Assembly (NCBI GenBank): GCA_047495785.1
Contig: JBLDXI010000045.1
Location: 806,001 to 870,000 of the forward strand
Direction of reading: 5' to 3'
DNA: 64,000 nucleotides
Source of the DNA: Lepidodermella squamata
Lineage: Eukaryota > Animalia > Gastrotricha
The notes beneath the pieces were generated by a model. The model was not told where the DNA came from. It ran no database searches and worked only from the letters and a program-made list of their open reading frames with translations. The translations under genes were made by a program, and so were the position numbers. Below, one piece after another: positions 54,738 through 62,087 of the stretch (its first letter is position 1; every line of letters begins with the position of its first letter).

Positions 54738-56524
54738 TCACTTTTTGGGGCAAAATACGTCATTAAGATAGTCGATGATTTCGTGGTAACCCTGCCGGCT
54801 GACCTTGGACCGAATTGCCCCGCAGTTGATAGACTCGCAGTGTTGCGCACGCTCCAATTGACTGTGATCTACCCGAGTACAGCCTGCGGCTCGCATTCTC
54901 TCGACCAGCCGCCGATTTTCATCGGCCAACACATCATGCGAGCATGACTGAACAAAAGTACGAGGCATTTGAGCCAGATGCTCATCCGAGGCGAGTAGAG
55001 GCCATGCTCGAATGCATGAGGCTAGTTCCAATATCGCAACAGGGATCTTCGGCACATCTTCCATAATCTTCCGCTTTTTCAACTTTTTCTCGTGTTGCTT
55101 CGATATAATTTCTTCGGTTTCCTGTTCGAAACCGGAATCCATCGATTTCTCCTCATTGCATTCGGCAGAACCAGGAGCAACGAGGTTGATAAGATACCGA
55201 TGTTCGTTCAGCACGTGTTGGTCGTGGTAAATTGCCCTGATTGTTTTCCGACTTGGCCTAACACCGGCGTAAACTGACATGAACCAGCCGAGGTTGGCTC
55301 TGCCGTACTTTCGCGTGTACTTGCGTGAACTTTCGAGACTCATGGTAATCGCTTGACTAACAGGGCAGATGAGCACGCATGCATGCAGTCGATTTTCGCC
55401 GCTTCTAATCAACTCTAAAGCAGTTGCGCAGGCTAAATTACCCCCGGCGCTGTCGCCTGCTATGACAATCTTTTCCGTATCAATCTCAGCCGGTAAACTA
55501 GAATCTGCGAAGTGAGATGAGTTAATTTCAGCGTTGAGAATCGCCCGAGTCACGGCTATGCAGTCATCCAGGGCACATGGGTAGGGAAATTCCGGGGCTA
55601 ATCGATAATCGATTGATACTACAATAGCACTGGTGTCGCGACACAGCCTTGTAGTAAGAGAATGATACGATCTCGCCGAACCCATCATCCAGCCTGAAAT
55701 CGAGAAATTTCATATTTTTTAGGATGGAATATAAATTTTCGAAATCTCCCATATGACCTCAATATTTCCAAAAATATGTTCTCGCTGCCGCTTGAATTCA
55801 AGCTTTTTTGTTCACGTGAATACAACATGAACGAGTAACACCTGCGCACGTGGGTAAACAATAGCCGCGTGATTTTTTCATGTTTTTGGTCCTAAACTGT
55901 TTTATGTGGGCAAAATGGTGTGGAATTCACTGAGCCCGAGCGTGCGTGGCGTACTTGCTCGATTAAAAATACGTGAGCATCCTTCGGCCATGGGGCTAAA
56001 ATTCTTTGTCTAATTTCATAACAAAAATTCGAGTTCTCCAAAATACACGCAAAAGACCACAAATTGCGCTCACCTCCTCCGTGAATATAAATCAGACAGG
56101 GCAATTTAGTAAGGAAGACGCAGCTTTGCTCATCGACTGCTTTCACTGGCCGATAAATGCGGACTTTGACCCCGGCGATATTCGACTTGGAATGGTGAAC
56201 ATGAGGATGCTGAAGCCGTTTCGATCCACTGAAGGCCCTCATAAAACGCCGCATGACGCTGTAGTAGGCGCCTTTGAAGCCGAAACGCGATAGCATTTCG
56301 CCGAGACCGAGCGCCCCACTGGCCGAGCCCAACAAGAGCCGACGTCGCCACCGATTCTCAAGGTAAGCTTTCCTGACTTTAGCATCCTCCTCGTCTTCCA
56401 GGAATTCCGGTCCTTCGGCGATTATTTCGTCCGCGCCCATTGCTATTGTCAACCGGCGGCTGTTTTTTCTGCCAACAATTGACTCACTGTCGATGAATTT
56501 CAGCTCTTCATCGCTAGCTGCCAT
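54738..56524 (-). CDS. HSL-family alpha/beta hydrolase (AADAC/NCEH1-like esterase), 2 exons (56524-56074, 55693-54738)
   Basis: HGG|GW oxyanion motif split by the intron; SIDYRLAPE; GDSAGGNL nucleophile elbow; catalytic Asp (HDVL) and His (AQHC). Confidence 0.92.
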
Positions 56525-57400
56525 TATTTTACCGCCGATACCTCGATTTGTCAATTAGTTGAATTAGTTTTAAAAACAAATTGCTAGCGAGTGTGAAATA
56601 AACAATAAAAAAGTTGCCGGCAAACCGCGTGTGTACTCAAGAAGTACTTTTTTAGCTGTTGGGTGCGTGTGACCCCGCGATTTCAAATGATGAATCTTAG
56701 ATAATATATAGCTACTTTTTTCGACAGCGAATAATAAGGAATATTACGGCGCAGTATAGTCGACAACAGGTAACGGGGCACACACGTGCTGCTTGTTAAC
56801 CCCGTCTTTTCGCGGACTTTGGACCCGCATGAGCCTTTTGTCGTTCTCGGTAATGAGATACACGCCGTGGCGCCCTCAGTCAAGAGTGGGCTCGCGCTTA
56901 ACACTCATTATCCTTATACTTCACGAATGAAAAAAATGAAAAATACCGGCAATATACACAAACAAGCGCAGCGTATTTCTGGCGGGGAATTTTAGAGTAA
57001 GTAATACGGCGGCAAAACAAACAAATAGCTGAACACTCTTTCATTTGATCCTCTCCAAGTTGAGAGCATTACAATTATAGTTGTCATTAGGAAATTTCTG
57101 GCGAAATTGACCAACAAAACCGCGTTAATCTGATCTTGGCACTTGTGAGCTTTCGTGGTGGAAATAAAAGTTGACAAGTCATCATTTATCTCTCAGGGTT
57201 CAAAGTCCAATTTCAGGTAACATGACTGCTGTATTCAGCTATTCACCCTGAAACTCGGGACAACGTCATAAAACAAAAATGACAAAACTCACAGCGACTT
57301 TATTTTTTTTTCATCAACTCAACATCAAAGTTTTACAGTGAAAACAATAAGTATTATTTATAAAAATAATTACAAAATTACTATACATTTTGATAATTAG

Positions 57401-58328
57401 TTAGGCGCTAAAATTCGAAAAATAAGTTGCAGCTAATAGCGATGCCAAAGATAGCAAAGGCAGCGAAGCGAGGCTGATGGCGCCGGAGAAGGCTTTGCAC
57501 GTCAGGCCACGATTGCAGTTATCTGAGCAACACGTGCACATTTGAACGCTAGAAAATGCACCGGCATTTGTGTCGTAGGCGATGCTAGACTCGAAGCAGG
57601 CATTAACCTGCGGGTAATACGTTCCGGGCAGGGTAGCTGGCGGCTGGACGTAGCCGGGTGCTCGCCACGCAGTCCACGGTACAGGCTGAACCCAAGCAGC
57701 CCACGGTGCTGGTTGAACCCAGGCAGACCACGGCGCCGGCTGAACCCATGGCGCCCAAGGTGCGGGCTGCGTCCATGGGGCCCAGATCGCGGGCTGTACT
57801 GCCCAAGGCTGCGTCCAAGGCGCCCATGGTACGGCACCCCAAGCAACGGGAACTGGCGACCAGCCAACAGGTGGTTGGCCCCAACTTGACCAGGCAGCGA
57901 CGGACCAGGCTGCAGACCACGCCCCGGACCAAGTTGTCCACGAAGGCCGCGATCCGGGCGCCTGTTTAGGGCGGTACAGGTCAGTTGCTGCGGGGATCAT
58001 GCCATTCAAATTGAACTGAGCTGAACTACCGCACACCCAGATCCAGATGGCGCCTCGATTGCCGTAATATTTTCCGCGCTAAAATATGTCCAGAAATAGG
58101 CCAAGAAATTTTAAGGAAGTTTCAAATTACCGCGCAGACATCACAACCGGTCTGCTGCCGACCATTTGATGGGTAATCGGAATCGGCATCCGTAGAGCCG
58201 ACGTAACAAGTCAAGGCTGAAATAAAAGAGCAATTGAAATTCGGATGACCAGTTTTATTTGTGAATTTACCAGCAGCTCTGTTTGCGAAGATGGCGATTA
58301 GGAGGAAGGATAATTTTCCGGGCGACAT
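57401..58328 (-). CDS. GPI-type Ly6/uPAR (three-finger)-like protein with a large Trp/Pro-rich insertion, 3 exons
   Basis: Signal peptide; LTCY...CDVC...C at the N-terminus; C...CTCCSDNCN at the end; small-residue omega region plus hydrophobic tail; 27-nt (9-aa) tandem repeats internally. Confidence 0.8.
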
Positions 58329-59819: not shown

Positions 59820-62087
59820 TTACTTTTTCAGTGATTTCAGCTGTTCGCGAAGTTGCGGGACCACTATAGGGCGCCAGTCTCGTTGTCTCGCGATAAATCG
59901 TCGAAAATGAGGCGATTGTTGCACCAAAGTCGCAGAGAGGATAGCTCCAGTCATCGAAGCGATTTTCATCAATAGCCCATAATCCTTGAAAGTCGATTGA
60001 TGGACTTTGCTAACTTTTCCCAAAGCGGACGTCACGCCCATAACCTCGCTAAAAAGCTCTTCAATTTCATTATTCCCCATTTTAGCTTGAATGAAAACTT
60101 CAGTGATAGGAACCATCGCAGGATCGCCAGAAATGATCGAATTTAAGCCCAGCATGAGGTTCATCAATTCATATGGTTCCGGCTCCTCGAAAGACATCAA
60201 ACGCCGTGCGATGAAAGCAGCAAATTGCTTCAGAGGCCCCGCAAATTCCTGCGACCAACGGGCTCGAACGTCCTTATCAGCAATTCGCACGAGGGTGGCG
60301 AAACAAAACACGCTACTTTTTTCCTTATTGAAGGCAAATCGCACCATATCGCGAGCAACTGCAGTGTCCTGGAAAATCAGCCGAGCGAATTCGCCATTTC
60401 TCGACGACAAAATCATGCTGGCGACAAAATCAGCGACTCGAGCCGTGAAGCCAAGTTGCAGGAGGTAGTGATGGCCGGCATGCTCAGACGCGTATTTCTC
60501 CATGATTTCAGTCGCCCTGGGTAGAAATTTCACCATTCTCGTCGAAAACTCATCACAGTCCGCCAGATTTTTCAGCAACGCCAGATTCGGCCGAGCTAAG
60601 GCAATCGTCACGACAGTATGTTTCATACTCTGAGAGATATCCGCCTTTCCGTCTTTCATCAATCTCTCGCCAAACGGCACCGTAAATTCAAGCCTGACCG
60701 AGTTGCAAACGTGAAAGGATAGATGATTATTGATTAAATAATCCATAGGTAGAAACAAGTTGCAGAACTCATACGGAAGGTGAGTTAAAACTCCGAATAA
60801 GTTCAACATCAACCAGTTGAACGTGGTTGGAGATTCATTAAAGCCTGGGTAACTGTTACCCGGGTCTTGAACCAGGGTTTTATTGGCCCAGTCGCCAAAT
60901 GACAGCAGATAGGCAAGCATTATTAAATCCAGTGATTTTCCACGTTGTACCAAGGGTGAATTTTCTATGCACCGCAGGAAAACTTGGTTGTCGCGAAGTT
61001 TTTGCAGGACATCTGAAAAGTGGTACTGCCACTCGGAGGTTCCGACCTTTTGAACGCAAGTGCGAAGATCGCCGAACTTCCGGCCGGAGAACACGAACAG
61101 AATTATCGCAGACGCGTACCAGCTCAAATCGTCGAACGGTTTGACTAGAACAGCCCGGGCCGGGTCGGCCGTGATTTGGCTGAAATACGGCAGGGCTAAA
61201 ATGCCCCAGCCGATGAAAGCATTTTCAATATAGCCAGGTTTAGACGAAGCGAGTCGAATTAAAGCTTGGCGACTGACGCAACTGTAACCGAATGATTTTA
61301 GGAAATTTCTGTACCAAGGCTGGTTGATGACAGACTTGCATACCGGACCGTTTTGAACCCCATCGGCGATATAAATCCAGTTGGCAAGCATTTCGGAGAA
61401 CCAATAGAAAAATCTAAGTTCTGAACTCGTTGAAGTCGCAGGGTTCAGGCGTTCGAAAAACCAGAGAAGAGCTTTATTTTCGTTCAATTTGCTCAAAAGA
61501 TGAGACTTCCGTCGAAAAGCTTCTTTATACTCTTTGGTTGTGTCGACAACGTAACGCCGCATGTGGACAACGGTGTATAGGTTGAAATCCCAGCTTTTCG
61601 AATCGTCAATTGCTACAAAAATTTCGAGGCATTTCTCTAAATCTTGAACTCCGAACTGCCCTACGCCAAGTTTTGAATAGCCAGCCCTGAAATACGGCAC
61701 CAGCTCTTCGCCCTCGCCTTCGTTGCTGATCGCGTGAGTCGCTAGGGCTATTGCGGTTAGTTCTTCGTACCGTTTCAACTCGAACAACATAGCACAGGCT
61801 TCCATGGCGAGTTCAACCGTGTAGTCGCCGTGCATTTCAGCTGCTTCGTTGTAGCACTCGAGAGCGTCTTCGAAGCGACGCGAATTTTTAGCGAATCGGC
61901 CGCGTCTCATAAGTTCGAGGATTTCGCGGTCACGCTGTTTCGCCGCTGCCGGGCCACCGCCGGCTTTTTCTCGGGTCACCCTGCAGAACTCGGCGACTTT
62001 GTAGCGGTCTTTCAGGTCGAGGAAGTGCTGGTAGACATCGACTGACCCCGGCTTGGCATCATCGCCGAATATCAGTTCAAAAGCCAT
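59820..62087 (-). CDS. Uncharacterised intronless 755-aa helical protein with N-terminal TPR-like repeats
   Basis: Long uninterrupted ORF; GRFAKNSRRFEDALECYNEAAE is TPR-like; conserved with the adjacent paralogue. Confidence 0.8.
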   Translation of the reverse strand: MAFELIFGDDAKPGSVDVYQHFLDLKDRYKVAEFCRVTREKAGGGPAAAKQRDREILELMRRGRFAKNSRRFEDALECYNEAAEMHGDYTVELAMEACAMLFELKRYEELTAIALATHAISNEGEGEELVPYFRAGYSKLGVGQFGVQDLEKCLEIFVAIDDSKSWDFNLYTVVHMRRYVVDTTKEYKEAFRRKSHLLSKLNENKALLWFFERLNPATSTSSELRFFYWFSEMLANWIYIADGVQNGPVCKSVINQPWYRNFLKSFGYSCVSRQALIRLASSKPGYIENAFIGWGILALPYFSQITADPARAVLVKPFDDLSWYASAIILFVFSGRKFGDLRTCVQKVGTSEWQYHFSDVLQKLRDNQVFLRCIENSPLVQRGKSLDLIMLAYLLSFGDWANKTLVQDPGNSYPGFNESPTTFNWLMLNLFGVLTHLPYEFCNLFLPMDYLINNHLSFHVCNSVRLEFTVPFGERLMKDGKADISQSMKHTVVTIALARPNLALLKNLADCDEFSTRMVKFLPRATEIMEKYASEHAGHHYLLQLGFTARVADFVASMILSSRNGEFARLIFQDTAVARDMVRFAFNKEKSSVFCFATLVRIADKDVRARWSQEFAGPLKQFAAFIARRLMSFEEPEPYELMNLMLGLNSIISGDPAMVPITEVFIQAKMGNNEIEELFSEVMGVTSALGKVSKVHQSTFKDYGLLMKIASMTGAILSATLVQQSPHFRRFIARQRDWRPIVVPQLREQLKSLKK

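Follow-up and report, generated by a model that had tools for sequence, protein, structure and literature searches.

Introduction

Few extracellular scaffolds are as compact and as widespread as Ly6/three-finger domains, whose known variation is found mostly in finger length or outside the domain. Here we describe a gene on the minus strand of a 64-kb stretch of the Lepidodermella squamata genome (C45:806001-870000; this whole stretch is called the window, and positions are numbered within it) whose predicted product combines a Ly6-like cysteine (Cys) scaffold with a long tryptophan (Trp)-rich insert. The nearest described proteins, QVR/sleepless-type Ly6 proteins (PF17064) and LU-domain proteins (PF00021), share with it a signal peptide, the pattern x-x-C-Y near the mature N-terminus, and a glycosylphosphatidylinositol (GPI)-type tail. 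The PF17064-positive genes of the same genome are also alike in having C-x2-C followed by a basic residue and an ending of the type C-x-C...D-x-C-N. In contrast to QVR and LU domains, the protein described here has an extra Cys pair (C-x-CC and a Cys after CN), and the link between its fourth and fifth Cys (the Cys4-Cys5 link) is 144 residues long, compared with roughly 5-12 residues in QVR and LU proteins.

Three further groups of proteins bear on the insert. GPIHBP1 is a GPI-anchored LU protein with a functional disordered region, which lies N-terminal to the LU domain and is strongly acidic, whereas the disordered segment predicted here is an uncharged, aromatic stretch within the domain. 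The described substrates of DPY19 enzymes (thrombospondin type 1 repeats, the WSxWS motif of cytokine receptors, and WxxW in mucin CysD domains) are alike in presenting WxxW on a secretory protein. As far as is known, these substrates carry one to a few sequons within folded domains that are stabilised by the mannose; here, eight sequons lie in a long, probably disordered Cys-free array, and C-mannose is a prediction. Puroindolines display a Trp-rich loop on a disulfide-rich scaffold, and Trp/Pro-rich peptides of the indolicidin type bind membrane interfaces; both are short and cationic. The present insert, with 144 nearly uncharged residues, has no sequence relationship to them, and the analogy underlies the alternative, weighed below, that the Trp residues act unmodified.

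Taken as a whole, the explanation to which we incline, if only slightly, is that of a lineage-specific Ly6-like gene whose product would be GPI-anchored and would carry C-mannose on an insert in the Cys4-Cys5 link.

Structure and Coding Capacity of the Gene

The gene was read from the sequence as three exons on the minus strand (58328..57401) with 273 codons and 10 Cys. A preliminary description of this DNA had given the interval 57401..58328, which coincided exactly with the extent of the gene; it had also pointed to a C-terminal CTCCSDNCN motif, which was present, as was a hydrophobic tail. The features of the gene were as follows.

58271..58328, minus strand: exon 1, ATG and hydrophobic signal peptide; 19 codons plus 1 base, phase 1
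58217..58270, minus strand: intron 1, 54 nucleotides, GTAAAT...TTTCAG, 30% GC
58131..58216, minus strand: exon 2, LTCY to GCDVCA; Cys 1, 2 and 3; presumed finger I
58079..58130, minus strand: intron 2, 52 nucleotides, GTAATT...TTTTAG, 29% GC, phase 0
57401..58078, minus strand: exon 3, 225 codons plus stop; hairpin, insert, C-terminal Cys module and tail
58031..58078, minus strand: presumed finger II hairpin RGKYYGNRGAIWIWVC, ending at Cys 4; kept in the paralogues (alignment A1)
57599..58030, minus strand: Cys-free insert in the Cys4-Cys5 link, 144 residues (432 nucleotides), 65% GC
57665..57940, minus strand: Trp array with all eight WxxW motifs, exon-3 residues 47-138
57665..57769, minus strand: 27-bp (9-residue) tandem array W(V/T)QP(A/V)PWxx, 3.9 copies (Tandem Repeats Finder)
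57497..57598, minus strand: C-terminal Cys module C-x19-C-x-CC-x3-CN-x4-C; Cys 5-10; presumed finger III and CCxxxCN end
57404..57496, minus strand: GPI-type C-terminal signal; small residues S-G-A, then a hydrophobic tail that ends the protein

Both introns were AT-rich and bounded by canonical GT..AG pairs, with donors of the form GTAA(A/T)T. When the genome (121.2 Mb in 151 contigs; the same assembly was searched for relatives) was queried with exon 3, the exon found itself with 100% identity.

Several properties of the insert bear on whether it is translated. Its GC content was 65%, compared with 29-30% in the introns, and no intron-like in-frame GT..AG interval, judged by donor or AT-rich composition, was found across it. 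Among the four clean 27-bp units, differences at codon positions 1, 2, and 3 stood at 11:6:27, a third-position excess that is expected if purifying selection acts on the peptide encoded in this frame. All four synonymous codons (CCC, CCG, CCA, and CCT) were used for the first Pro of the unit, and QP(A/V)PW was retained. This pattern of divergence implies that the repeat is old, being neither a recent slippage product nor an assembly artefact. By these measures the insert is coding sequence, and the gene is very probably intact, real, and translated together with its Trp-rich insert. A point on the other side is that the protein was absent from the results of both a word-index protein search with exon 3, which returned zero matches, and a full HMMER search.

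The Trp-Rich Insert

The insert was defined as the stretch from the Cys of ...IWIWVC to the next Cys. Its 144 residues included 21 Trp (a share of 15%), 27 Pro, and 26 Ala, and only 5 of the 144 were charged. Eight WxxW motifs were present (WTTW, WSSW, WAPW three times, WSAW, WAAW, and WTAW), compared with 2.9 expected from shuffles of the insert (P=0.003). The closest distance between two Trp was three residues and no Trp were adjacent (shuffles, P=0.0006). The counts thus bear out the preliminary description, which had spoken of a Cys-free insert of over 100 residues with about 21 Trp; the same eight WxxW motifs were recovered in exon 3, and the 9-residue repeats that it had reported correspond to the 27-bp array listed above.

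In AlphaFold models of exon 3 (three sequences), the insert was nearly all coil, with three 4-residue helical turns and a predicted local distance difference test (pLDDT) score of about 23-31. A search of the ESM Atlas with the insert as query gave no usable look-alike. The 9-residue motif of the W(V/T)QPAPW type was found genome-wide only in this gene and in one unrelated open reading frame (ORF) on contig C29, and the idea that the repeat had been borrowed from another gene was rejected. The C29 sequence (L024, C29:884497-884517) lies in a 232-residue ORF rich in Pro, Met, and Thr that contains a single WIQPAPW and no signal peptide, and it is seemingly unrelated.

Paralogues and Relatives

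Two tandem paralogues on contig C42, L002 and L006, came to light when the genome was searched first with exon 3 and afterwards with a profile; the model of L002 is complete, and that of L006 begins at the end of its first exon. Their exon boundaries and phases were identical to those of the window gene. The phase-1 intron after the signal peptide was seen in L002, where exon 1 is complete, and in L006, where the 3' end of the exon and the donor were present; the phase-0 intron after C-x2-C-x was found in L002, L006, L011, and L014. The three genes had in common a CY near the mature N-terminus, C-x2-C, RGK, (I/Y)W(I/F)WxC, and C-x-CCSD-x-CN with an additional Cys. Each C42 paralogue had its own Trp-rich, nearly uncharged insert at the same site, of 98 and 152 residues, and likewise enriched in WxxW. 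The paralogues differ from the window gene in lying on another contig and in being only 42-45% identical to it in the scaffold. Their inserts are Gly/Ala-rich or Ser/Thr-rich and unrelated in sequence to that of the window gene, which is rich in Pro, Ala, Val, and Gln and has a regular 9-residue unit.

The C-terminal module, the hydrophobic tail, and the phase-0 intron behind C-x2-C-x recurred in more distant relatives in the genome (L009, L010, L011, L012, and L014). The link from Cys4 to the following Cys had 9 residues in L014 and was a Thr/Ser/Pro-rich, mucin-like stretch in L009-L011, which makes the Cys4-Cys5 link a hot spot for low-complexity expansion. The linkers of L009 (C32:3.10 Mb), L010 (C42:3.02 Mb), and L011 (C42:3.83 Mb) were about 25-50 residues long and were followed by two extra Cys. 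We also noted that two Ly6-like loci, L012 (C31:98226-98423) and L013 (C48:543747-543944), have a 177-residue last-exon frame that translates identically and near-identical flanking ORFs; the two are copies from a very recent duplication or, alternatively, an uncollapsed haplotype.

An HMMER search of 1.84 billion representative proteins with a profile of the three paralogues matched only two proteins, P0001 and P0002, both from ENA assemblies and on contigs of about 10-11 kb; P0003 is a cluster-mate of P0002. P0002 and its cluster-mate were 50% identical to L002, and P0001 was 50% identical to L006. In the C-terminal module, identity was 78% for L002/P0002 and 71% for L006/P0001, whereas the window gene was 42-45% identical to all others, which sets it apart as the most divergent of the family, and as a paralogue of old standing. 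No orthologue of the window gene was on record among the 1.84 billion proteins, and a scan of JGI metagenome contigs gave 419 pattern matches, none of which was confirmed. The preliminary description had not recognised the design among described Ly6 proteins; our searches extend this absence to the 1.84 billion proteins, except for the two relatives of the paralogues.

Within the L002/P0002 and L006/P0001 pairs, the scaffold was conserved and the inserts were almost wholly changed. P0002 carries PVYNP repeats in place of the Trp-rich sequence of L002, yet the inserts of these pairs have kept their aromatic character, their high content of small residues or Pro, and their near lack of charge. 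The identity of 71-78% between the C42 genes and their counterparts in another organism implies that the Trp-rich state is old, even with insert sequences that are unrelated. As judged from these alignments, the window gene adds a third member, older and structurally distinct, to a small lineage-specific family of Ly6-like genes with Trp inserts.

Similarity to Three-Finger Proteins

The framework LTC..., C-x2-C, ...WVC, [insert], C-x19-C-x-CC-x3-CN-x4-C, with 10 Cys, fits the Ly6 pattern, taken here as a Cys at mature position 3, 8-10 Cys in all, and a C-terminal CC/CxC-x4-CN. The size of a compact domain (about 60-90 residues) is exceeded owing to the 144-residue insert; relatives with a 9-residue link would fall within it. 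The PF17064-positive genes of the genome have in common with this family a CY-x-G...C-x2-C-x-K start and a C-x-C-x4-CN end, but not the extra Cys pair. When the C-terminal module was aligned with the C-x-C-x4-CN end of these genes by hhalign, the two were collinear (E=0.03), and exon 2 aligned with their finger I (E=1.5e-4). A dense PF17064 (QVR) array was also observed on contig C6 (314-396 kb, L029-L033); the five genes fetched from it were single-exon genes with 8 Cys and no Trp.

Structural evidence pointed weakly in the same direction. With exon 3 alone, AlphaFold gave a pLDDT of 30 and predicted, at low confidence, a hairpin at the finger II site; exon 3 of the compact paralogue reached a pLDDT of 55, with two hairpins followed by a tail helix. 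When the compact-paralogue model was compared with 48,161 chains by VIA-align, three-finger folds made up 10 of the 50 top matches (Z 2.6-4.0): CD177 (two entries), TEX101, GPIHBP1, LYPD6B, the TGF-beta type I and II receptors, AMHR2, BMPR-IB, and Argos. Foldseek found no match to the same model. In the ESM Atlas, the nearest clusters to the C-terminal part were small and eukaryotic, and the named ones were QVR and UPAR_LY6, which we take as a lead only.

Several results weigh against membership in the Ly6 family. Pfam hmmscan at E<=10 assigned no family to the exon pieces of the gene, its paralogues, or its relatives, and six-frame scans of the genome located PF00021 at 37 and PF17064 at 46 other places and at none of the genes of this family. 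With alignments A1 and A4 as profiles, the PDB yielded nothing, or a chance match to L1CAM (E=1). In hhalign comparisons with six canonical Ly6 genes from the genome, the CCxDxCN motif alone aligned (probability 1-2%), and the alignment of the short exon 2 with finger I of the PF17064-positive (QVR-type) genes was also of low probability (52%). The structural Z-scores were all below 5 and were obtained with a model that covered only part of a paralogue, at low confidence, rather than the window protein.

The preliminary description had called the product a Ly6 three-finger protein; the Cys scaffold and motifs, together with the weak profile and low-Z fold matches, speak for this assignment, and the lack of a matching family model speaks against it. 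We consider a three-finger (Ly6-like) fold reasonably probable, and the protein is probably a Ly6-like, QVR-type derivative with an extra disulfide. The further proposal that one finger had been expanded did not hold, as the insert sits in the Cys4-Cys5 link, where paralogues have 9 residues or a Thr/Ser/Pro linker. If the domain is three-fingered, the insert replaces this short link between fingers II and III, in the domain head.

Secretion and Membrane Attachment

The core of the signal peptide (residues 6-15) had a mean Kyte-Doolittle hydropathy of 2.9. The last 22 residues of the protein had a mean hydropathy of 1.3 and, by inspection, no cytoplasmic tail followed them. The combination of signal and tail was common to all relatives and, again by inspection, has the characteristics of a GPI signal. 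The hydrophobic signal peptide and the S-G-A/hydrophobic C-terminus thus agree with the secreted Cys-scaffold protein with a GPI-type tail that had been proposed, and a GPI anchor is likely from these sequence features.

C-Mannosylation of the Insert

The DPY19 sequon is WxxW/C, and only unfolded nascent chains are modified (PMC10154233). This need for an unfolded chain is consistent with the prediction of the insert as coil. Two DPY19 (PF10034) loci were found in the genome, at C9:5013125-5015200 (520 and 45 bits) and C19:958845-960899 (490 bits); L015-L017 cover both, and the C19 copy is a single open frame of 706 residues. Compared with composition-matched shuffles, WxxW gave P=0.002 for the window gene and 0.002, 0.08, 0.03, and 0.004 for the other four non-redundant members, whereas WxxxW showed no enrichment over shuffles in family members. 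Three was the commonest Trp-Trp spacing across the family (26 of 72).

Other observations weigh against modification of the array. A sequon begins at only 8 of the 21 Trp, and five of the eight WxxW derive from one tandem repeat and are not independent. In L006, WxxxW was as frequent as WxxW. We know of no described C-mannosylation on a long disordered array. A preference for a small residue at position +1, considered as a mark of DPY19 sequons, differed from background (P=0.001), but Trp outside sequons had the same preference (Fisher P=0.30); being typical of all Trp, it gives no support for selection on the sequon and was rejected. Judged on the sequence evidence, a C-mannosylated Trp array is therefore put forward tentatively, as a possibility that falls somewhat short of even. 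A still bolder version, a mucin-like 'C-mannosyl-tryptophan brush' in which many WxxW Trp are mannosylated and which is evolutionarily interchangeable with the Thr/Ser/Pro linkers of the sister paralogues, seems improbable to us. The presence of those linkers at the same site may suggest a shared role as a glycan-bearing spacer.

Proposed Model

In the model that we slightly favour, the signal peptide would direct the protein into the secretory pathway, where the two Cys-rich halves would probably form one QVR/Ly6-type three-finger domain with one extra disulfide, and a GPI anchor would probably attach it to the outer cell surface. The Cys4-Cys5 link, which would lie close to the anchor in the domain head, would have grown to 144 residues that are Pro/Ala-rich and probably disordered, with a Trp every 3-7 residues. 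Selection would keep this segment translated and Trp-rich, and repeat expansion would turn its sequence over. In the endoplasmic reticulum, DPY19 enzymes would mannosylate the first Trp of WxxW on the unfolded chain, and the C-mannose would convert a sticky aromatic loop into a glycan-decorated spacer or a binding surface. The modified insert would then be the counterpart of the Thr/Ser/Pro mucin-type linkers in the sister paralogues.

Alternative Explanations

A non-functional locus, either an unexpressed or decaying copy or one whose GC-rich repeat is removed from the mature mRNA, would fit the lack of a record of the protein in the databases searched and the several other frames that are also open across the repeat; in addition, amplified DNA of a single animal was the source of the published assembly (PMC11660948), should that be the one used here. 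This explanation appears very improbable, because the frame is intact over 273 codons with canonical splice sites, the third-position excess points to purifying selection in this frame, the insert lacks intron-like features, and Trp-rich inserts in the same frame are kept in two paralogues and in relatives from another organism. A different doubt concerns the fold. The protein may consist of two separate disulfide-knotted modules, of four and six Cys, joined by a variable low-complexity linker, in which case the likeness to Ly6 would be limited to the CCxxxCN-type ending. The even number of Cys in each half and the failure of Ly6 family models and PDB profiles to match would agree with this, as would a linker that ranges from 9 to about 150 residues across the family, which would be easily tolerated between modules. 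However, compact members have a link of 9 residues and, over the whole mature chain, the length usual for LU domains, both halves are collinear with the matching parts of the QVR-type genes of the genome, and three-finger folds are heavily over-represented in the top structural matches. We regard two modules as doubtful; since this possibility concerns the fold and overlaps the other explanations, its probability is not to be added to theirs.

The remaining alternative accepts the gene and asks what the Trp residues do. An unmodified array would be an aromatic 'sticker' loop. As the insert leaves the domain head beside the site of GPI attachment, the loop might lie in the interfacial zone of the outer membrane leaflet; it might instead adhere to cuticle, substrate, or a partner protein through hydrophobic contacts or pi-stacking. 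A segment that is 15% Trp, nearly uncharged, and free of adjacent Trp suits such a role, as does its insertion in the head region near the C-terminal anchor, and the paralogues retain aromatic content and low charge rather than sequence. WxxxW and longer spacings are also common, and the replacement of Trp by Tyr (PVYNP) in P0002, which DPY19 would not use, fits a sticking loop better than a mannosylated one. On the other hand, it is WxxW and not WxxxW that lies above shuffles in every member, the genome encodes DPY19, glycosylation-type Thr/Ser/Pro linkers occupy the same site in sister paralogues, and an unmodified disordered loop with 21 Trp would be prone to aggregation in the endoplasmic reticulum. 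Weighing these points, we consider an unmodified array rather unlikely.

Neighbouring Sequences

A 755-residue open frame (59820-62087, minus strand) lies directly upstream of the gene and matched no Pfam family at E<=0.001. A tRNA was looked for upstream of the gene and none was found. An alpha/beta-hydrolase fold-3 gene was recognised at 54738-55688 on the minus strand (Pfam Abhydrolase_3, 3e-40). The ORF at 55892-56554 on the same strand contains an HGGG-type motif and had no Pfam match; as a guess, it may be the upstream exon of the Abhydrolase_3 gene.

Implications

A long, disordered, Trp-studded segment within a Ly6-like domain, kept by selection, as the sequence of this gene suggests, had no counterpart elsewhere among the 1.84 billion proteins searched. 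C-mannosylation of the WxxW array, if it occurs, would widen the known scope of this rare glycosylation from the stabilisation of folded repeats to the decoration of disordered linkers. Should many Trp of the array be mannosylated in a mucin-like manner, the protein would provide the first case of dense C-mannosylation outside a domain and a natural model substrate for DPY19. If the array is not mannosylated, it would present an unusual extracellular, uncharged, aromatic low-complexity region on a putative lipid-anchored protein, which would be relevant to adhesion or to the biology of membrane interfaces in an animal phylum that has been little studied.

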